Assembly (NCBI GenBank): GCA_977020255.1
Contig: CDROCS010003176.1
Coordinates: forward strand, 62,001-126,000
Length of the DNA: 64,000 bases
Direction: 5' to 3'
DNA from: Obrimoposthia wandeli
Lineage: Eukaryota
This document shows positions 11,090-21,425 of this stretch, piece after piece (the stretch's first letter is position 1; each line of letters starts with the position of its first letter). A program made the translations under genes and the position numbers. The notes beneath the pieces are model-generated. The model worked only from the letters and a program-made list of their open reading frames with translations, was not told the origin of the DNA and ran no database searches.

Positions 11090-12451
11090 GTGATCACTGT
11101 CGAAAGAAAAGATGGGCATAAACTTAAAATTTCCCATGTCATTCAGGAAACAACTAATCGACAGCTTGATATGTATATTTTCGTTCCTGGTGAACTTGGC
11201 TTGCATTCCAATATCGTTACTGAAGATGAGTTTTATCACAATGCTATTCACGGTAAACGTACGTACTACAGTGACATAAACCACCTGCCACTTGTACACA
11301 GTCGACTCGCCAGCCGAGGTAAGTTATCAAGTGAACAGTATCGTTTAAGTTTGAGTTTATATGCCTACCAGTATGCGCTTGCGCTTGAGAAATCAGCTCA
11401 GCAATTATTAGATGATAAACAAGAACGTGATTTAGAAGAAGTCGCAGAAGTCGCCCAACTTTGTGTGCGCATTCTTAAGCGTTTACGTAGAAGTCGCCCT
11501 ACTGATAAAAAACTGCTGAAATACTACGAAAATATCGATAATTACTTATCGTGGTTTACCGAACAACGTTGCCTTGCATTAGTATCGCATCTACCTCGCG
11601 GCAAAGAATACCCTGAAATTAAGGAAATGCTGCTAGAGACCTGCAAAACAGAATCAGAGCACCGTACTAAGCACGACTACAACTCAACAAAAGCAATGCA
11701 AGATCAAACGCGTATGTCTAACAAGATGCGTTTACTGCGGCGCTTGATTGAATACCCGGTAACAATGAAAGAAAAAACCATTGAACTGGGTAAAAATACT
11801 AAGAAAATTGTGACTGGTTTGGCTGCGGGTATCGTGATGATTTTCGTTACCATTATGCTGATTAAAGCACGCGGTTTCTTAGGTGATATTACGGCTTCTT
11901 TTATCTTGGTACTGTCTTTGATCTATGCGGCTCGTGAAGTATTCAAAGACGATTTGAAAATAATGTTATGGCGTCTATTGCGTAAAGGCAAAGCAAAGTG
12001 GCGTAAGCAATTCTTCGATGCAAATACAGGGCACCTAACAGGTCGTCAGCTTGAATGGCTGGAATATACCAACTACGACGCATTAGAAAGCGATATTAAA
12101 AAGGTACGTAAACACCAAGTATCGCAACGTGAAGAAACGATATTGCATTACAAAAGCACCACTCGTATGTCGCCTACTAAATTTTTAAGTGGTTATGAAC
12201 AAACACTTGAATCGATCATGCTTGATTTACGTGTATTTACCCGTTTAATGGAAAAAGGGTCACAGCGAATTTACCAACTCAATGATGGGCAGGTTACCAA
12301 AGAGTCAGTTGAAAAACGTCACTTAATCAATCTGATCACCAAAGAAACAGATGAAGATGATACGGTACGTATTCAACGATGGAAGATCATCATGAACCGT
12401 TCTCGTATTATTGATGTGGAAGTCATGGAAACAATCACACCTGAAAAATAA
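11090..12451 (+). CDS. Hypothetical protein with two predicted TM helices
   Basis: 453-aa ORF with an AGAGG RBS and GTG start; hydrophobic hairpin IVTGLAAGIVMIFVTIMLI...FILVLSLIYAA; no family recognised. Confidence 0.8.
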   Translation: MITVERKDGHKLKISHVIQETTNRQLDMYIFVPGELGLHSNIVTEDEFYHNAIHGKRTYYSDINHLPLVHSRLASRGKLSSEQYRLSLSLYAYQYALALEKSAQQLLDDKQERDLEEVAEVAQLCVRILKRLRRSRPTDKKLLKYYENIDNYLSWFTEQRCLALVSHLPRGKEYPEIKEMLLETCKTESEHRTKHDYNSTKAMQDQTRMSNKMRLLRRLIEYPVTMKEKTIELGKNTKKIVTGLAAGIVMIFVTIMLIKARGFLGDITASFILVLSLIYAAREVFKDDLKIMLWRLLRKGKAKWRKQFFDANTGHLTGRQLEWLEYTNYDALESDIKKVRKHQVSQREETILHYKSTTRMSPTKFLSGYEQTLESIMLDLRVFTRLMEKGSQRIYQLNDGQVTKESVEKRHLINLITKETDEDDTVRIQRWKIIMNRSRIIDVEVMETITPEK

Positions 12452-12590: not shown

Positions 12591-13859
12591 TTATGCGTTA
12601 AGTGCTTGTTCTAAATCAGCAAGAATGTCCTCAATGTGTTCTATCCCCACAGATAGACGGATCATTTCAGGGGATACGCCCGCTTGCTTTTGTTCTTGTT
12701 CATTGAGTTGTCTGTGTGTCGTCGATGCTGGGTGGCAGGCTAAAGATTTTGCATCCCCAATATTGACTAATCGTTTGAAGATATTCAGGGCATCATAAAA
12801 ACGAACGCCAGCATCATACCCGCCTTTTAATCCAAAAGAGAGGATCCCAGATGGTTTACCTTTCATGTACTTTTTAGCTAATGAATAATGCTTTGAATCA
12901 GGAAGACCAGCATAATTAACCCACTCTACTTTATCGTGCTGATGGAGATATTCAGCGACTTTGAGGGCATTTTCAGTATGTCTTTCCATTCGCAGCGATA
13001 AGGTTTCTAAGCCTTGCATTAGCATAAATGCATTCATAGGAGATAGCGCTGAGCCTGTATTGCGTAATGGTACCGTGCGCGCTCGTCCGATGAAGGCCGC
13101 TTCACCGAATGCTTCGGTATATACCACGCCGTGATAAGACGGTTCAGGTTGGTTAAATACTGGAAAACGATCTTTGTGCTCAGCCCAAGGGAATTTGCCA
13201 GAATCGACAATCATGCCACCGAGTGTTGTACCGTGACCACCGACGTATTTCGTTAAAGAATGTACAACGATATCGGCGCCAAATTCGATAGGCTTACATA
13301 ATACGGGTGTTGCAACGGTATTATCGACAATAACAGGCACACCTTGCGCATGAGCAAGCTCTGCGACTCGCTCTAAATCAATGATGTTACCCGCTGGGTT
13401 ACCAATACTTTCACAGAAAATGGCTTTGGTTTTTTCGTCGATAAGTTCCGCTAAGCTTTCTGGTTTATCGTCTTTCGCAAAGCGTACTTCAATGCCTTGG
13501 TTTGGTAACATATGAGCAAATAAGGTGTAAGAGCCACCGTAGAGCTGTGGTGTTGCAACGATATTATCGCCCATTTGTGCCAATGTTAGAATCGCATAAT
13601 TGATAGCTGCACTGCCTGCACTTACTGCTAATCCTGCAACGCCTCCTTCTAGTGCTGCCATGCGCTTTTCCAGCACATCGTTAGTTGGGTTCATAATACG
13701 AGTATAAATGTTCCCTGGTACTGCTAGATTAAAAAGGTCTGCGCCGTGTTGTGCGTTATCAAACTCATAAGCGACAGTTTGGTAAATTGGCGTGGCGACA
13801 GATTTAGTCGTTGGATCGGTTTCATAACCAAAGTGGATCGAGAGTGTTTCGTCTTTCAT
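12591..13859 (-). CDS. metY: O-acetylhomoserine sulfhydrylase (Cys/Met metabolism PLP enzyme)
   Basis: PIYQT, GNIYTRIMNPT, PLP-Lys HSLTKYVGGHG, NIGDAKSL, HPASTTH; start at MKDETL. Confidence 0.88.
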   Translation of the reverse strand: MKDETLSIHFGYETDPTTKSVATPIYQTVAYEFDNAQHGADLFNLAVPGNIYTRIMNPTNDVLEKRMAALEGGVAGLAVSAGSAAINYAILTLAQMGDNIVATPQLYGGSYTLFAHMLPNQGIEVRFAKDDKPESLAELIDEKTKAIFCESIGNPAGNIIDLERVAELAHAQGVPVIVDNTVATPVLCKPIEFGADIVVHSLTKYVGGHGTTLGGMIVDSGKFPWAEHKDRFPVFNQPEPSYHGVVYTEAFGEAAFIGRARTVPLRNTGSALSPMNAFMLMQGLETLSLRMERHTENALKVAEYLHQHDKVEWVNYAGLPDSKHYSLAKKYMKGKPSGILSFGLKGGYDAGVRFYDALNIFKRLVNIGDAKSLACHPASTTHRQLNEQEQKQAGVSPEMIRLSVGIEHIEDILADLEQALNA

Positions 13860-14140
13860 TGTTCTTCCTTGAATATAATTAATGGACAATTTTTTATACG
13901 TTTTCTATCTAAACACGTATAAAAAGCCGTTTCTGCTATCTATGGAGTATAAGGCCAATGGGGCGATTTCGTATCCTAATAAATATTTATACACTAATTA
14001 GATACAGTAAAGCTAAAGCAATAGTATCGTTGTTGTATTAAACGTCATAAACAAGGCTATCATTTAGATAGTTAAGCAAACTAGCTTACCAACTAATAAG
14101 GGATATCGGCGGTAATTTCCTGTCGATAAAACGTGACGTT

Positions 14141-14524: not shown

Positions 14525-15154
14525 TTAGTCATTAACTAGCTCAACCACTTCTCGAGTTAAGCGAGCGATCGTATCCCAATCTCTACTTTCAATGAGTTTT
14601 TTATCCACCATCCAAGTTCCACCACACGCCAATACCTGCGGAATGGATAGATAATTTTTTATATTATTGACAGTGATACCGCCAGTCGGCATTAATTTGA
14701 TATCGCCATAAGGTGCGACTAAAGACTTAACCATATTTATGCCGCCAGAAGCCTCTGCTGGGAAAAATTTAAGCGTTGTAATTCCCATTTCTAATGCTGC
14801 TTCAACGGTACTTGGGTTATTTACCCCAGGAATAATTGTTATCCCCATATCTTGGCATGCTTTAACAGTATTAGGGTTAAATCCTGGTGAAACAATAAAA
14901 GTGGCGCCTGCTTCTTTGGCTTCTTTAACTTGCTGACGATTAAGTATAGTTCCAGCGCCAATTAACATGTGAGGTTGTGATTCGCGGAGCAAGCGAATTG
15001 CATCTACGGCAGCCGCAGAGCGAAACGTAATTTCAGCAGCTGGCAGTCCATTATCAGATAACACTTTCCCTAATGGGATAATATCTTCAGCATTATCTAG
15101 CGCAATAACTGGAATAATTTTTAGTGTTTTAAGTTGTTCATTAATTGTAGGCAT
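14525..15154 (-). CDS. eda: KDPG/KHG aldolase
   Basis: AEITFRS, IGAGT, FIVSPG, KFFPAEASGG and MPTGGI. Confidence 0.93.
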   Translation of the reverse strand: MPTINEQLKTLKIIPVIALDNAEDIIPLGKVLSDNGLPAAEITFRSAAAVDAIRLLRESQPHMLIGAGTILNRQQVKEAKEAGATFIVSPGFNPNTVKACQDMGITIIPGVNNPSTVEAALEMGITTLKFFPAEASGGINMVKSLVAPYGDIKLMPTGGITVNNIKNYLSIPQVLACGGTWMVDKKLIESRDWDTIARLTREVVELVND

Positions 15155-15162
15155 TTTTATTC

Positions 15163-16119
15163 TTACTGTAAGTTGAAAAGGGTATCAGTCATTTCTTTAG
15201 GAATGATTGCGCCATGATGTTGTATAACTAGCCTTGCTAACGCATTGCCTTGATGGCATGACGCCACCACTGAGCCACCAGATAGATAGCAAGATAAAAA
15301 TCCACCATTAAAGGAATCCCCCGCAGACGTACTATCAACGACAATATCGACTGGGCTGGTAGCTATGTGTGCGGGAGAGCTCCCTAAACGTTCACTTACA
15401 AGGCATCCTTCTGCGCCGAGCTTTACAATAACCGTTTTTACACCCAAATTATGAAGCCTAGAAATGGTCTCTTGTGGCTTAGTATCTCCCCATAGAAGTT
15501 GTTCATCTTCAAAAGTAACCAATGCGATGTCTGTTACTTGATAAGCAAGCTGATAAACCTCTTTTGCTGCAAAGATTGATGTCCACAAATTAGGCCTGTA
15601 ATTGCTATCAAAAGTAACTTCAATTCCTTGGTTGCGTAATTCTTCCAAAAATGACAATAAATCGATTTGATCTTGATACGGTAGGATCGCGAGGCTAATA
15701 CCGCTAAAAAACACCATATCAACAGAACGAAGTTCCTGTTTAAGTTGACAAAAATTAGGGTGTTGTATCATGTAGCGCGCCGCTGAATCATTGCGCCAAT
15801 AGAGAAAGTTTCTTTCTCCTTTATCATCAAGTTGGATCAAGTATAGTCCGGGAGTTCGATTTTCATCCCTTAAGACTAAGTCTGTCGATATTCCTTCATT
15901 TTTCCAACGAGAAATCATTTCTTCACTGATAAGATCAGTGCCTAATGACGTCACATAACTAGTGCGTGTCACATGTGAACATGTTGTATCGTCTTGCAAG
16001 CAACGATTTAAATATATCGCCGCATTTAAAGTGTCACCACCATAGCTTTGATGCATCTCTCCAAATGGTGAGCCGTTTAATTCAATCATGCACTCACCGA
16101 TGATAGCGATGTGGCTCAT
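15163..16119 (-). CDS. kdgK: 2-keto-3-deoxygluconate kinase (PfkB family)
   Basis: GECMIEL, GGDTLN, FDSNYRPNLW and DSTSAGDSFNGGF. Confidence 0.9.
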   Translation of the reverse strand: MSHIAIIGECMIELNGSPFGEMHQSYGGDTLNAAIYLNRCLQDDTTCSHVTRTSYVTSLGTDLISEEMISRWKNEGISTDLVLRDENRTPGLYLIQLDDKGERNFLYWRNDSAARYMIQHPNFCQLKQELRSVDMVFFSGISLAILPYQDQIDLLSFLEELRNQGIEVTFDSNYRPNLWTSIFAAKEVYQLAYQVTDIALVTFEDEQLLWGDTKPQETISRLHNLGVKTVIVKLGAEGCLVSERLGSSPAHIATSPVDIVVDSTSAGDSFNGGFLSCYLSGGSVVASCHQGNALARLVIQHHGAIIPKEMTDTLFNLQ

Positions 16120-16168
16120 AAGTCTGCCCTTATCGATATAGTTTTCTATTGTTTGGGGTTCTAACTAA

Positions 16169-16195
16169 GTGGGTCATAACAGTGTCATGACCCAC
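16169..16195. promoter_or_regulatory. Intercistronic stem-loop between the PTS gene and kdgK
   Basis: GTGGGTCAT-N9-ATGACCCAC, no U-tract. Confidence 0.45.
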
Positions 16196-16236
16196 GCTTA
16201 ATTAATCCAGTTCTAGGAGAATTTAATCTATATAAA

Positions 16237-17670
16237 TTACTTATGATCCAATTTAACGAAAAGCAGGGCCAAAATATAAGAGAGTGCAAATACGCCACAC
16301 ATCGCAATAATCGCTTGAATAAAGTTTTGTGTCCCTCCAGAAAGGTAAGCTGGCAAACTGAATACAGAAGACAAGACATAGGTCGTTAAGTGAGTATCAA
16401 TAGTTACTGATATCGCACCAAAAATCCCGGCAGCCAAGCTTGCAGTCATTAATGCCCTAGTGTATTTAGTTAACACGCCAAATAAAGCAGGTTCAGTAAT
16501 GCCTAAAATCGCAGTAACACCTGAACTCGCAGTAACTGAAGACTCCGCTTTAGAAACAAATTTGCGCTGTTTGTGCCAGATCGCCATCGTTGCCCCAGCG
16601 ATAGCTAGATTGCCTAGACACATAATTGGCATCAATAAGTCTTTGCCGTAAAGTGAAAAATTATTCAAACTAATTGGCGTCATACTATGGTGAATACCAA
16701 AAACAATAGTGATTGGTCGAGTTATACCAAAAACAAAGCCCGTAAGTGTTGGTGATATTTCGAGTAGTGATCCAACCGCCCAGCCTGCCCCGTTACTCAG
16801 CCAAATACCTGCAGGACCTACAAATGATAAAGTGATCGTTGACGTAACAGTGAATGCTAAAAGTGGAGTAAGTACAGGCTTGGCCGCAGATGGAACAAGT
16901 CTATCGACCAAAGGTGTCACTTTCGAAAGCAGCCAAATAGCTAATATCGCTGGTATAATGGCCCCTCCGTAATTCAGTAGTTCGATGGGCACAACCCCAA
17001 GAATGGTTAATTCAGGTGCTGCACCAATATCTTTAAGCTGCGCAGCTTTATCTATAAGCTTTGGAGCAAGCATGGCCGACGAAACGGCAATCGCAATATA
17101 CTCATTTACCTTGAAGATCTTTGCAGCGGAAAAAGAAACGAGCATTGGTAAGAAGAAAAAGACAGCTACAGATATGGAGCGAAAGAAATATACCGTATCT
17201 GAATTTTCAGAAATAACATTTGTTGCAATTAGGCCAGATAGCAGCCCCATTAGCATACCCGCCCCTGCTATGGCTGGTACTACAGGGCCAAAAATTCCCG
17301 CGACGATTCGCATCAATCCCTGAAATAGTTTACCTTTTTCAAGATTATCAGATACAACGGCATCATCCTGTGACGTGTTTGAAATCGCGTTGTACCACTT
17401 TTCAACATCAACACCGATGATCACCTGTGTCTGTCCTTGCTGGAGCACAACACCTTTAACGGCGGCAATCTTCTTGATTTCGTCTTCATTAGCTAAAGAT
17501 TCATCAACAAGCTTGAACCTAAGTCTTGTCATACAATGCGTAACATTTATTATATTTTGTTCACTACCGAGAGCATTGATTAATAACTGTATATTTTCAT
17601 TGAATTTCTGATTTTTCGATGACGAGCTTGTGTTGTTAGCAATATCGCCATTCGTTTCAATAATTTGCAT
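16237..17670 (-). CDS. PTS EIIBC component (Glc superfamily, sucrose/beta-glucoside type)
   Basis: EIIB phospho-Cys motif THCMTRLRF; EIIC motifs FFFLP, VIFGIHH-like and GITEPALFG; no EIIA domain. Confidence 0.92.
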   Translation of the reverse strand: MQIIETNGDIANNTSSSSKNQKFNENIQLLINALGSEQNIINVTHCMTRLRFKLVDESLANEDEIKKIAAVKGVVLQQGQTQVIIGVDVEKWYNAISNTSQDDAVVSDNLEKGKLFQGLMRIVAGIFGPVVPAIAGAGMLMGLLSGLIATNVISENSDTVYFFRSISVAVFFFLPMLVSFSAAKIFKVNEYIAIAVSSAMLAPKLIDKAAQLKDIGAAPELTILGVVPIELLNYGGAIIPAILAIWLLSKVTPLVDRLVPSAAKPVLTPLLAFTVTSTITLSFVGPAGIWLSNGAGWAVGSLLEISPTLTGFVFGITRPITIVFGIHHSMTPISLNNFSLYGKDLLMPIMCLGNLAIAGATMAIWHKQRKFVSKAESSVTASSGVTAILGITEPALFGVLTKYTRALMTASLAAGIFGAISVTIDTHLTTYVLSSVFSLPAYLSGGTQNFIQAIIAMCGVFALSYILALLFVKLDHK

Positions 17671-17886
17671 AACGTACCTATAACTGGAAATGACTTAACA
17701 CGAGCTATCATATCTACAATTAATATTAATCCAATCGCAGAAAAGGAGAGCAAAATCACACTTAAATATGGAATATTTCTTTTTTCACCTTTTTCATCGA
17801 ATTGGTCTGTTTTATTTACAAATATAAAAACCTTTCCGTACCAATTATTTTCTTACAAAATTACCACTTGAAATATATTTTTTATA

Positions 17887-17902
17887 CCTGTTATATAATA
17901 GG
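17887..17902. promoter_or_regulatory. Candidate GntR/HutC-type operator in the divergent promoter region
   Basis: Near-perfect palindrome CCTGTTATATAATAGG (one mismatch). Confidence 0.45.
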
Positions 17903-17930
17903 AGTTAACATTATTTCAGGTTATTTAATT

Positions 17931-19130
17931 GTGAAGAAGACTATAATATCCGATGTGCACTGTATAATCACTAAACCAGACAGACACAACTTAATAACGG
18001 TTGTCGTTGAAACCGACGAGGGTGTAACTGGCTTTGGATGTGCCACGTTTCAGCAGCGGCCACTCGCAGTAAAAGCTATGGTTGATGAATATTTAAAACC
18101 TATTCTCATCGGTAAAGATGCTAATAACATTGAAGATCTTTGGCAGATGATGATGGTTAATGCTTATTGGCGAAATGGGCCTGTCATTAACAATGCTATC
18201 TCTGGTGTAGACATGGCACTGTGGGATATAAAAGCTAAATTAGCTAAAATGCCTCTACATCAATTATTTGGTGGGAAATCTCGCGATGCCATTCCAGTAT
18301 ATACTCACGCAACAAGTGATACTATGGATGGCATTTATGAGTTGGTCGATTCTTTTTTAAATAAAGGATATAAACACATACGTTGTCAATTAGGATTTTA
18401 TGGTGGCGTTCCCAGCAATATAAATACAGCTCAAAACCCTACTGATGGTTCATATTACGATCAAGATCAGTATATGGACAATACATTAACCATGTTTAGA
18501 CTTCTTAGAGAAAAATATGGTAATAAATTTCATATCCTACATGATGTGCATGAGCGGTTATTTCCGAATCAAGCCATTCAATTTGCCAAAGATGTAGAGC
18601 AATATAAACCCTATTTCATTGAAGATATTTTGCCACCCAGTCAAACAGAGTGGTTAGATAATATTAGAAGTCAAACGTCGGTATCTCTTGGTCTGGGTGA
18701 ATTATTCAATAACCCAGAGGAATGGAAATCTTTAATCAGCAACCGTCGTATTGATTTTATTCGTTGTCACGTATCGCAAATTGGTGGTATTACCCCTGCA
18801 CTAAAGCTTGGGCATTTGTGTCAAAACTTTGGTGTTAGAATTGCTTGGCATTGCCCGCCAGATATGACGCCCATAGGCGCTGCGGTCAATACACATTTAA
18901 ATGTCCATTTGCATAATGCTGCCATTCAAGAGCATGTCGAATATAACGATAATACGAAGATGGTATTTCCAAATGCGGCTGAACCTAAAAATGGTTATTT
19001 GTATGCTTCTGAAATTGAAGGGATCGGTGTCGAAATTGATCTTGAAGCAGCTTCAAAGTTTCCCGTAGTTTATCGTCCTCATGAGTGGACTCAAAGTAGG
19101 CTCCCTGATGGGTCTATTCACACACCTTAA
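17931..19130 (+). CDS. Enolase-superfamily acid-sugar dehydratase (mannonate dehydratase/RspA subgroup)
   Basis: GTG start; [42 protein letters not shown] and AWHCPPD. Confidence 0.9.
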
Positions 19131-19146
19131 GATAGTAACGACTAAG

Positions 19147-19172
19147 AAAATAGCCGCTAGAGCGGCTATTTT
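19147..19172. terminator. Bidirectional terminator overlapping the GntR stop codon
   Basis: AAAATAGCCGCT-AG-AGCGGCTATTTT. Confidence 0.8.
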
Positions 19173-19873
19173 TTATCTCTGTAGTCAATACTTTCACTGT
19201 TGAATGGGGTGTGATAAGTACATTGGTAATTTATATCAATAATGTCACTCACAATAAATAACGCCCCTGCATTAAGAAATCCCCGATTCGTTATATTCAT
19301 TGCCGCTGTGTTTTTTTTACACCCAAGCACGTCCGAATCTTCCTTTGATACACTAATAGCTTTATATGTTGTTAAATAGCTATCTATATGGAGCCCAAGA
19401 GATAAGGCATGTTTTTGCAATGAACTTTCAATAATGAAAGTGTTCATCTCAGGAAATATCTTTACTGGAATCTTAGCCTCTTCAATTTGAATAACTTTGT
19501 CATGAATCAGCCTTAACCGCCTAACATTCCATATATATTCACTATCAGTAAGAGCGAATATTTGCTTCTCATGATGCGTTGGCAGTCTTTTATTGAGTTT
19601 GATTTTTTTATATGAGATTTCTTCAAAACTATTTTCAGTAATAGAGTTATATATTAGAGGAGTTTCGATAATTGAAGCATTAACAAAGTAGCCTGACCCA
19701 AGTTTTGCAGTAACAATTCCTATTGCTTCAAGCTTTGCCAGAGCCTTTCTGATTGTAAATCTTGATAACCCATATATTTCGGAAAGATCTCTTTCTGAAG
19801 GTAATTTATGGCTAATACTATTTTGACAAATCTTACTCACAATATCTTGAACTACCAATTCATACTTTTTCAT
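19166..19873 (-). CDS. GntR-family regulator (HutC/UTRA type)
   Basis: KLPSERDLSEIYGLSRFTIRKAL wHTH plus a UTRA-like C-terminal domain; start at MKKYEL. Confidence 0.9.
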   Translation of the reverse strand: MKKYELVVQDIVSKICQNSISHKLPSERDLSEIYGLSRFTIRKALAKLEAIGIVTAKLGSGYFVNASIIETPLIYNSITENSFEEISYKKIKLNKRLPTHHEKQIFALTDSEYIWNVRRLRLIHDKVIQIEEAKIPVKIFPEMNTFIIESSLQKHALSLGLHIDSYLTTYKAISVSKEDSDVLGCKKNTAAMNITNRGFLNAGALFIVSDIIDINYQCTYHTPFNSESIDYRDKK

Positions 19874-20325
19874 GCTACTCAACAAAAAATAAATTAACCT
19901 CATGTCTTTATTACGTTAGTAATAAATGTAAATTTGAGGCTTTGATAAATATGAATTAATTTATCAAATATAAGATATTAAGTAGTATAACATATAATTA
20001 GCACCGTTTAATTGAGACTTTTTAACAAATCACTTATTTCTGATTCTCTGTTTAGAACAATTGAGTATGCAACTGAGAAGCTGCACAATGCAGTTGGGTG
20101 ATTCCTTGCTTTTTTCTATCACGTTAGTGATGATGTTATCTAAATTTAGAAATAAAACAGTAATCATTTATGATAATAATATCAACACATTCAACCAGCA
20201 TCTAAGTGAAGCTATAAACAATTAGGCAATCTTTTCCAGTAGCCTATCATGCCAGTTATATCATTTTAATACAGATTAGAGCACCAACTATCAGCGGCCT
20301 AACCTGTGCGAATAGATACGATATG

Positions 20326-21096
20326 CTATTGCCGTTCTTTTAGATAATTATTTTCCATTAGTTCTTCATTTAACCCGCTTAGCTTCATCTGATCCATAAT
20401 AAAGTTAACGGCATTCAACAATCGCTGTTCACTCTTCGGAACCAAATAACCAAACTGACCTTTGGTGAATGGATCGTCACATCGGGCGGCTTCTAAACGT
20501 TCATCCGTAACTTGATAAAACAAACCCTCAGGGGTTTCGGTTACCATTACATCTACCTTGCCGTCAGCTACGGCTTTCGGTACATCTAGATTGTTTTCAA
20601 AGCGGGTAAAGGCGGCCTTTTGTAGATTTGCATCAGCAAAAGCTTCGTTGGTTCCACCGATGTTAACACCAATACGTACTGAAGCTTGGTTGACTTTATC
20701 AAGAGAATTGAACTGTTCAGTTTTTCCTTTCGCAACCAAAAAGCATTTTCCAAACGTCATATAGCCTTGAGTTTGCTCTGCATTCAGCTGGCGTTGTATT
20801 TTCCGTGTAATACCGCCCATGGCAATATCATATTTATCGCTATTCAAATCGTTTAATAGATCTTTCCACGTAGTGGGAACAAGTTTTAGTTCAACACCTA
20901 ATTCTTTGGCTATGTGGGTGGCCACATCAATGTCGTAACCGGAATACTGCTTCCCATCGTAATAAGAGAACGGCTTATAATCCCCTGTTGTACCTACACG
21001 TAATGTGCCTGTCTTTTCAATATCTTCCAGTTGATCTGAGTTGGCTGCACCAGATAGGGTAACTGCAACCCCAATAACTAAGAGCGATTTTTTCAT
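20326..21096 (-). CDS. Periplasmic SBP-family-3 protein, cyclohexadienyl dehydratase (PheC)-like
   Basis: Signal peptide; LRVGTTGDYKPFS, GYDID, GGIT, NIGGTNE and DVMVTE. Confidence 0.8.
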   Translation of the reverse strand: MKKSLLVIGVAVTLSGAANSDQLEDIEKTGTLRVGTTGDYKPFSYYDGKQYSGYDIDVATHIAKELGVELKLVPTTWKDLLNDLNSDKYDIAMGGITRKIQRQLNAEQTQGYMTFGKCFLVAKGKTEQFNSLDKVNQASVRIGVNIGGTNEAFADANLQKAAFTRFENNLDVPKAVADGKVDVMVTETPEGLFYQVTDERLEAARCDDPFTKGQFGYLVPKSEQRLLNAVNFIMDQMKLSGLNEELMENNYLKERQ

Positions 21097-21425
21097 TATT
21101 ATATTCATATTGTGATTGCTAGAAGTCTGAGATTAGCAGAAAGAACCGAAAAAAGAGAACTAATGAATTATCGTTTAGGGCTTATTTAGTTGAGTGTAAT
21201 ATCGAGTTAGCCTATCGGTAAATCAAATTCTCCCTAAGAGCTTTCATGCTATAGCCCTCCTTAATACGTTAACAATTCATTCATTATCTTTAATGATTAA
21301 CTATATCTACACATCTTCTGTTTTTATCTTTGCTTTATAATTCCTCCGGTTCCAAACATAACTATTTTAATAATAAATCAAACCATTTTCTATTTATCTT
21401 TTTCATATTAACGAGGGATCAACAC

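Follow-up and report, generated by a model that had tools for sequence, protein, structure and literature searches.

We have analyzed a sugar-acid cassette in a 64,000-nucleotide stretch of DNA from the Obrimoposthia wandeli assembly GCA_977020255.1 (contig CDROCS010003176.1, positions 62,001 to 126,000 of the forward strand), referred to here as the window; all positions below are those of the window. The cassette occupies 14525-19903 and consists of five genes, each found intact by a listing of open reading frames (ORFs) combined with Pfam and NCBIfam family scans. Three of them form an operon on the minus strand. The operon begins with the gene for an EIIBC of the phosphotransferase system (PTS), a member of the beta-glucoside/sucrose branch of the Glc superfamily with PF00367 and PF02378 domains and no EIIA domain (16237-17670), and continues with kdgK, which encodes a 2-dehydro-3-deoxygluconokinase-like PfkB kinase (15163-16119; PF00294, 2e-58). 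The final gene is eda, encoding a KDPG (2-keto-3-deoxy-6-phosphogluconate)/KHG (4-hydroxy-2-oxoglutarate) aldolase (14525-15154; PF01081, 1.5e-78). Divergent from this operon, on the plus strand, lies the gene for a 399-amino acid ManD-subgroup enzyme of the enolase superfamily, a putative beta-eliminating dehydratase or lyase (17931-19130; PF02746 and PF13378) that we call the orphan enzyme. It is followed on the minus strand by the gene for a GntR-family regulator of the HutC subfamily (19166-19903; PF00392, 1e-12, and PF07702, 5.3e-17). An earlier note, made from the DNA sequence alone, had listed these five genes and had remarked that EIIA, glycosidase, dehydrogenase and phosphatase were missing. 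All five genes are indeed present, and none of the missing functions is encoded within the cassette interval.

The central part of this arrangement is conserved. We examined 83 loci, those of 80 species genomes together with loci from Pectobacterium polaris and a Clostridium, and in all 83 the EIIBC gene is directly upstream of the dehydratase gene and divergent from it. A GntR/UTRA gene lies downstream of the dehydratase gene in 78-80 of these loci, and most of the exceptions are at contig ends. No further conserved gene was found among the 83 loci, glycosidase, phosphatase and EIIA included, and thus the core is a three-gene cassette. The module is present in Vibrionaceae, Pectobacterium, Rahnella, Dickeya, Klebsiella, Providencia, Clostridium and metagenomes; among the metagenomic contigs with the same trio one looks Firmicutes-like and another enterobacterial. 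The chromosomal contexts occupied by the core cassette are unrelated to each other. The association of EIIBC with the dehydratase is therefore far beyond chance, and the cassette is both conserved and mobile. The earlier note had pointed to a biochemical mismatch between a PTS and a ManD/RspA-type dehydratase, and had allowed that the two might turn out to be unlinked in orthologous loci, or the dehydratase to be an ordinary mannonate or gluconate enzyme. The mismatch is real, and neither possibility is borne out: the linkage has no exception in our sample and the enzyme scores far below the cut-off for ManD.

The ORF of the orphan enzyme was called at 17802-19130, and the homologues, all of 399 amino acids, begin together with the family alignment at the GTG codon at 17931; an AGG is found at 17918-17920, 10 nt ahead of this codon. 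The enzyme is 92% identical to the crystal-structure chains PDB 3R25, 3SBF and 3DFH, which we take to be from Vibrionales bacterium SWAT-3. It is also near structures 4GGH, 3S47/3GY1, 3TJI and 4HNL, presumably from Vibrio harveyi, Clostridium beijerinckii, Enterobacter sp. 638 and Enterococcus gallinarum, respectively. Structure 3SBF reportedly contains D-arabinonate, and a further structure, 4GIR, sulfate. Orthologues at 71-92% identity were found in Vibrio, Aliivibrio, Photobacterium, Psychromonas, Pectobacterium, Dickeya, Rahnella, Yersinia, Serratia, Gilliamella and Clostridium, and a scan of species genomes found relatives of the enzyme in 447 stretches. Membership in the ManD subgroup is evident from the MR_MLE N- and C-terminal domains, from the Mg ligands D205, E231 and E257, which never vary and line up with the Asp/Glu/Glu ligands of ManD at the ends of barrel strands 3, 4 and 5, and from the retention of the strand-2 arginine R151 (HIRCQ), the strand-6 arginine R278 (DFIRCH) and the histidine acid H207 (HDVHER). 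The complete set of these invariant positions in the alignment is R151, Y157, D205, H207, E231, E257, R278 and H307, and the metal ligands and acid/base residues are unchanged across the 70-92% identical orthologues. In the ManD structure 2QJJ, roles have been described for Arg147 (strand 2), Tyr159 and Arg283 (strand 6) (PMC4570537). R278 of the orphan enzyme corresponds to Arg283 of 2QJJ.

The enzyme nevertheless falls outside ManD proper. Its score with the ManD equivalog model NF043051 is 377.8 bits, below the cut-off of 550, whereas true ManDs score 706-744, and among the NCBIfam models it is below the cut-offs of both the ManD and the GalD families. The lid loop in the 150-180s falls about 10 residues short of its length in true ManDs. 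The tyrosine stands within a GFYGG motif, as in the clade of GlcD-like enzymes, while true ManDs have S/T-Y-G at this place. Relative to true ManDs the basic residues H19, R272, H280, R382 and H384 have been gained and K76, R82, H208, H248 and H283 have been lost, and no clear phosphate-site signature was seen among these changes in the family alignment. The orphan enzyme thus retains the apparatus for beta-elimination on acid sugars, yet it is not a ManD equivalog.

The position of the enzyme within its subgroup is best seen in Pectobacterium colocasium, which has three subgroup members: an orthologue 76% identical to the window enzyme, a GlcD-like enzyme (46%) and a true ManD (39%). Since all three coexist in one genome, the orphan enzymes constitute a separate orthologous group; together with the low equivalog score, this sets the enzyme apart from the ordinary mannonate dehydratase that the earlier note had considered. 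The GlcD-like paralogue in Pectobacterium is accompanied by a short-chain dehydrogenase/reductase (SDR), a major facilitator superfamily (MFS) transporter and an FCD-type GntR regulator, and the true ManD by an RspB-like Zn-dehydrogenase and an MFS transporter. Both paralogues therefore occupy classical contexts for free acid sugars, unlike the module. By sequence the closest clade to the orphan enzyme is the GlcD-like one, with 46% identity and a GxYGG motif common to both; its members are labelled in databases as mandelate racemase/muconate lactonizing enzymes or as putative dehydratases. The 2014 study of the ManD subgroup by Wichelecki et al. is said to have found GlcD-like members active on gluconate and, reportedly, the orphan clade inactive on a library of free acid sugars. 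Database names for the enzyme itself include RspA, mannonate dehydratase, galactonate dehydratase, 2-dehydro-3-deoxy-6-phosphogalactonate aldolase and 'enolase C-terminal domain-like', and the curated-style name is merely 'D-galactonate dehydratase family member VSWAT3_13707 / VME_00770'. One and the same 399-amino acid protein bears at least five product names in public records, of which the aldolase label is clearly wrong.

In the EIIB domain of the EIIBC, the phosphorylatable cysteine that the earlier note had reported as intact was located at Cys46, in the sequence HCMTRLR, and in EIIC a GITEP motif is found at residues 390-394. The top model of the EIIBC is the beta-glucoside permease TIGR01995, with 352.6 bits against a cut-off of 614.7, followed by models for sucrose, trehalose and N-acetylmuramic acid (MurNAc) transporters, and the window EIIBC passes none of these specific cut-offs; the match to the MurP family model is 115 bits. 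The EIIBCs of the module all behave in the same way, with the beta-glucoside subfamily first (352-437 bits, below the same cut-off) and then sucrose, trehalose, cellobiose/arbutin and MurNAc. Known members of this branch transport glucosides, disaccharides or MurNAc. The cassette PTS is thus intact and of the glucoside type. The EIIA that the earlier note had reported as lacking is indeed absent from the cassette, but this is no anomaly: a free-standing Crr was found in all 5 hosts tested, in 3 of which it is the sole EIIA-Glc domain, and the absence of EIIA from the cassette is therefore ordinary.

Of the two other enzymes, Eda scores above the cut-offs of both of its models (NF004325, 305.7 against 241; TIGR01182, 277.6 against 156) and has the Schiff-base lysine motif LKFFPA at residues 128-133. 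KdgK has the PfkB fold and a DSTSAGD motif, and scores 366 bits with NF052444, for which the cut-off is 400. The pair kdgK and eda follows EIIBC in 25 of the 83 loci, and neither gene is found there singly. The kdgK gene is intact in all 26 loci carrying it. The Clostridium kdgK and eda products are only 25% and 32% identical to those of the window, with the gene order unchanged, which suggests that the pair was recruited independently in Clostridium. Ratios of nonsynonymous to synonymous substitution rates (dN/dS), estimated from 26 loci, are 0.014 for the dehydratase, 0.028 for gntR, 0.034 for EIIBC, 0.045 for eda and 0.112 for kdgK; all five genes are under purifying selection, which is strongest on the dehydratase. 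We conclude that kdgK and eda are functional additions to the core. Among 44 host genomes KdgK is present in every one and Edd in 22-24. These host enzymes show no relation to the presence or absence of kdgK and eda in the module, and their distribution favours none of the readings discussed below. Three Aliivibrio loci (L012:5633-6430, L015 and L017) have, directly downstream of eda and on its strand, a gene for a HAD sugar-phosphatase of the Cof type (PF08282; the match to S6PP is weak), which may have joined the operon in a lineage-specific manner.

Other genes accompany the module less regularly. A RafY-type glycoporin gene is located between the dehydratase gene and gntR in 4 splendidus-clade loci and after eda in 3 harveyi-clade loci, and an OmpG-like porin gene follows EIIBC in 2 loci (Klebsiella sp. 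and Cedecea). The RafY-like porin of the Vibrio fortis module (L019:11890-12998) matches as two pieces that abut at residue 240, and its gene is probably frameshifted. An 896-amino acid protein resembling glycoside hydrolase family 63 (GH63) YgjK and mannosylglycerate hydrolase (MGH) adjoins gntR, along with a RafY-like porin, in just 2 loci, those of Vibrio satsumensis (L010:14219-16909) and V. splendidus MOR1 (L014). With respect to phospho-glycosidases encoded elsewhere, GH1 is present in 41 of the 44 hosts. Searches of the host genomes of Vibrio litoralis and Erwinia typographi found neither GH1 nor GH4, and the module is intact in both; there it is thus independent of a host phospho-glycosidase.

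The regulator combines an N-terminal GntR winged helix-turn-helix with a C-terminal UTRA effector domain, as in other members of the HutC subfamily, and its nearest NCBIfam model is the trehalose operon repressor TreR, with a score under the cut-off of that model. The earlier note had ended the gene at 19873; the ORF reaches 19903, and 19873 corresponds to the second methionine, where translation could plausibly begin as well. Scans for promoters and inverted repeats in the window sequence alone were uninformative, and the divergent intergenic region was therefore examined as a footprint in an alignment of 12 species. In this alignment a conserved inverted repeat at 17800-17846, AATTGGTCTG - 27 nt - CGTACCAATT (AATTGGT and ACCAATT), has ATTGGT and ACCA..TT invariant in 12 of 12 loci from Vibrio, Aliivibrio, Klebsiella and Providencia, and it is a candidate operator for the HutC-type GntR. 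A candidate site for cyclic AMP (cAMP)-CRP, matched to the established consensus TGTGA-N6-TCACA, is located at 17745-17761, where the right half TCACA is invariant and the window has a degenerate left half. For the EIIBC operon a putative promoter on the minus strand at 17707-17734 would consist of a -35 TTGGAT (17729-17734) and a -10 TATGAT (17707-17712), both of them conserved blocks in the alignment. The dehydratase gene may be transcribed from a plus-strand promoter at 17868-17899, with the elements TTGAAA (17868-17873) and TATATA/TATAAT (17892-17899); the blocks CTTGAAAT and GTTATATAA are likewise conserved among the 12 species. Parts of all five genes are matched at 97-100% identity by contigs of a marine-sediment metatranscriptome; as DNA carry-over is possible, this is weak support for expression. 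DNA nearly identical to the cassette is also found in seawater, sediment, ice and food metagenomes.

The immediate surroundings of the cassette are unrelated to it. They include a MetY-type sulfhydrylase gene at 12591-13889 on the minus strand, an amino-acid binding protein gene at 20326-21108 and a chemoreceptor (MCP) gene. The MetY protein is 98-100% identical to Photobacterium frigidiphilum proteins, and the cassette belongs to the genome of a cold-water, P. frigidiphilum-like Photobacterium. Homologues of MetY in the databases have 422 amino acids and cover 98% of the 432-amino acid ORF, so its TTG start was probably placed about 10 codons too early. Between MetY and a CvfB-like S1 protein there is an ORF of 453 amino acids with a GTG start (11090-12451, plus strand) that has no Pfam or NCBIfam match. 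The cassette had been described as AT-richer than its flanks, and a GC profile bears this out for gntR alone (0.327): eda, kdgK and EIIBC are at 0.40-0.41 and the dehydratase gene at 0.389, giving 0.385 for the cassette against 0.402 for the whole window (standard deviation 0.032 per kb). A recent-transfer island defined by composition was accordingly rejected. The source assembly (1.35 Gb in 6912 contigs) is a mixture of many bacterial genomes, in which kdgK, eda and enolase-superfamily genes are present in numerous bacterial versions. How often kdgK, eda, EIIA or dehydratase paralogues occur in the assembly is therefore uninformative about the strain. A contig labelled as a Flavobacteriales metagenome-assembled genome (L025) carries a module with 87% (dehydratase) and 75% (EIIBC) identity to that of the window, and looks like either a misbinned Vibrionaceae-type contig or a recent transfer.

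The best explanation for the cassette is a self-contained, horizontally mobile catabolic unit. EIIBC, the orphan enzyme of the ManD clade and a repressor of the HutC type make up its core, which in the window is extended by kdgK and eda. Because the core stays together in very different bacteria, the pathway that it encodes is probably an undescribed one; searches of the full-text literature yielded no description of the module, nor of any PTS coupled to an enolase-superfamily enzyme. We consider it quite likely that this pathway is a dedicated one, fed by the PTS, in which the orphan enzyme would act on the PTS product as the committed step and supply 2-keto-3-deoxygluconate (KDG) or KDPG. 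As to the reaction itself, we favour a lyase that splits a phosphorylated conjugate of a sugar and an aldonate into a sugar 6-phosphate and KDG, because it accounts for more of the observations than the other readings do, among them the constant retention of kdgK with eda, the beta-glucoside type of the EIIC, the repeated recruitment of glycoporins and the hosts free of phospho-glycosidase, even though we hold its chance of being correct to be somewhat short of even. In such a pathway EIIBC, working with the EI/HPr and Crr of the host, would import a compound resembling a beta-glucoside, with a hexonic acid of the gluco or manno series, linked through O-2 or O-3, as the aglycone, and would phosphorylate the 6-OH of its sugar ring; the family of the PTS is clear, and the substrate is our proposal. 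Judging from the conserved residues, the ManD-like enzyme would bind the carboxylate on Mg2+, its Arg/Tyr pair would take the alpha-proton, and with His207 as the acid the beta-substituent would be eliminated, which would give a sugar 6-phosphate and KDG with no glycosidase involved. KdgK would then convert KDG to KDPG, and Eda would cleave KDPG to pyruvate and glyceraldehyde 3-phosphate, as expected from their families; since the elimination would yield KDG, both enzymes would be needed. The operator-like repeat and the CRP-like site suggest that a phosphorylated intermediate may release the UTRA repressor and that cAMP-CRP may gate expression.

It is possible, but doubtful, that the orphan enzyme is in this way the first enolase-superfamily C-O lyase to work on a PTS product, with the reaction 6'-phospho-glycosyl aldonate to sugar 6-phosphate plus KDG. 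Equally tentative is the candidate substrate, an oxidised oligosaccharide end such as 2-O- or 3-O-glucosyl-gluconate. Several points weigh against a lyase of this kind. The kdgK-eda pair is absent from 58 of the 83 loci, and because these two genes often travel together kdgK may be a passenger. Porins are found at only about 9 of the 83 loci. Furthermore, we know of no natural 2-O- or 3-O-glycosyl hexonate that is a common nutrient, and to our knowledge no enolase-superfamily enzyme expels a glycosyl or alkoxy group.

The strict PTS linkage, which implies a phosphorylated substrate, and the retention of acid-sugar dehydratase residues are also consistent with a shorter route that the earlier note had outlined. 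In this route a monomeric acid sugar or its lactone would be phosphorylated at O-6 and dehydrated by the enzyme directly to KDPG for cleavage by Eda, with gluconate, mannonate or a glucosaminate-like compound as import candidates. The kdgK gene would then be a passenger or would salvage dephosphorylated KDG. We regard this route as the main and a serious rival, though on balance rather unlikely. It is the simplest reading of the loci that lack kdgK and eda, where a three-gene module would need just the host Eda, and a sugar-phosphate effector suits the UTRA regulator. The glucosaminate route of DgaABCD-DgaE-DgaF is an established precedent, and the absence of GH1 and GH4 from two hosts is compatible with a direct route to KDPG as well. 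However, the characterised members of this EIIC branch carry glucosides, disaccharides and MurNAc rather than open-chain aldonates, glycoporins have been recruited to the locus, and kdgK, itself under purifying selection, is never missing where eda is present. Were 6-phosphogluconate the intermediate, moreover, Edd would make a strictly linked dehydratase redundant in the hosts that possess it. An improbable variant takes the glucoside type of the PTS at face value and supposes a glycosyl-glycerate, e.g. glucosylglycerate, that is phosphorylated on its sugar and dehydrated in its glycerate part to an enol ether, which would give pyruvate and a sugar 6-phosphate. Such a two-enzyme module would be self-sufficient in any host, in keeping with its spread and with the many loci devoid of kdgK and eda. 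PTS uptake of mannosylglycerate is established for E. coli MngA/MngB, and the GH63 YgjK/MGH-like hydrolase next to gntR in two Vibrio loci points in the same direction. On the other hand, kdgK and eda would be unrelated neighbours, although they sit in an operon right after EIIBC in 25 loci, among them the apparently independent Clostridium pair, and the nearest clade by sequence, with its 46% identity and shared GxYGG motif, is GlcD-like.

Two further explanations have much less to recommend them. Many databases label the enzyme as mannonate dehydratase or RspA, and the product of such a dehydratase is normally processed by KdgK and Eda. We nonetheless think it very unlikely that an ordinary dehydratase of mannonate or gluconate feeds KdgK and Eda here, with the PTS either an unconnected neighbour or the importer of another sugar. 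The adjacency of the PTS holds without exception across phyla, the enzyme fails the ManD and GalD-family cut-offs, and true ManD and GlcD-like paralogues with MFS transporters coexist with it in the same genome. Its neutral 'family member' name and its reported inactivity on free acid sugars also weigh against an ordinary function. The same naming and reported inactivity would suit a dead enzyme, a ManD relic that the PTS or the regulator uses as a sensor or accessory; to this we give hardly any credence, as none of the metal ligands and acid/base residues varies among the orthologues and the dehydratase has the lowest dN/dS in the operon.

All of the gene families of the cassette are familiar. 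The closest system in logic is MurP-MurQ-MurR of E. coli, and the closest in fold is ManD/RspA. The Mur system is also a three-gene cassette with a dedicated repressor and a Glc-superfamily EIIBC that lacks EIIA and uses Crr. MurP imports a sugar with a carboxylic-acid substituent, as proposed for the cassette EIIBC, and provides a precedent for acid-sugar import by a Glc-superfamily PTS. MurQ, like the orphan enzyme in its proposed role, is a single cytoplasmic enzyme that replaces a glycosidase by a C-O beta-elimination. The two differ in that MurQ is an etherase of the SIS fold which takes the proton from the sugar, whereas the orphan enzyme belongs to the enolase superfamily and would take it alpha to the carboxylate. 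MurR is of the RpiR type in contrast to the HutC-type regulator of the module, and the Mur products are N-acetylglucosamine 6-phosphate and lactate rather than the KDG or KDPG proposed here. With ManD (NaManD, 2QJJ) and RspA the orphan enzyme shares fold and subgroup, the arginines at the ends of beta2 and beta6, the D/E/E Mg ligands and the histidine acid. It differs from true ManD in overall sequence (39% identity) and in its context of PTS and UTRA regulator instead of MFS transporter or Zn-alcohol dehydrogenase.

Other systems resemble individual versions of the proposed pathway. In the Salmonella D-glucosaminate pathway (DgaABCD-DgaE-DgaF) the PTS product is a 6-phospho acid sugar, which a single enzyme turns into KDPG, the substrate of an Eda-type aldolase, as would be the case if the orphan enzyme acted on a 6-phospho-aldonate. 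The Dga pathway uses a mannose-family PTS and a pyridoxal phosphate-dependent ammonia-lyase and has no KdgK; the module has a beta-glucoside-type PTS and a Mg-dependent enolase-superfamily enzyme, and keeps kdgK. The streptococcal loci for glycosaminoglycan disaccharides (Man-family PTS, unsaturated glucuronyl hydrolase, DhuI/DhuD, KdgK and KdgA) are closer to the lyase that we favour: a disaccharide of a sugar and an acid sugar enters by a PTS, the phosphate stays on the neutral sugar, and the acid half is converted to KDG, which requires KdgK and an aldolase. In the module one ManD-like enzyme takes the place of the GH88 hydrolase, isomerase and reductase that those loci need. Desai and Atsumi are said to have described cryptic use of cellobionic acid by E. 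coli through AscF/AscB, in which a beta-glucoside-type PTS imports an aldobionic acid. That route relies on a GH1 phospho-beta-glucosidase and ordinary gluconate metabolism, while the module has no glycosidase.

The clade of the orphan enzyme is represented by eight crystal structures (3R25, 3SBF, 3DFH, 4GGH, 3S47, 3GY1, 3TJI and 4HNL), yet it has only a placeholder name. The constant coupling to a PTS and a UTRA regulator, the repeated gain of kdgK and eda and the hosts free of phospho-glycosidase make phosphorylated compounds the substrates to consider, and make the enzyme directly testable. If it is a lyase, it would represent a new reaction type in the enolase superfamily and would open a new class of nutrients to Vibrionaceae, soft-rot Enterobacterales, insect-gut bacteria and clostridia. 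The cassette would then be a widespread bacterial route for the aldobionic-type acids that oxidases and lytic polysaccharide monooxygenases (LPMOs) produce in marine and plant habitats. If instead it acts on a 6-phospho-aldonate, it would be a dehydratase for this substrate of a type other than IlvD/Edd. Under either reading, the present automatic annotations in hundreds of genomes are wrong or uninformative.

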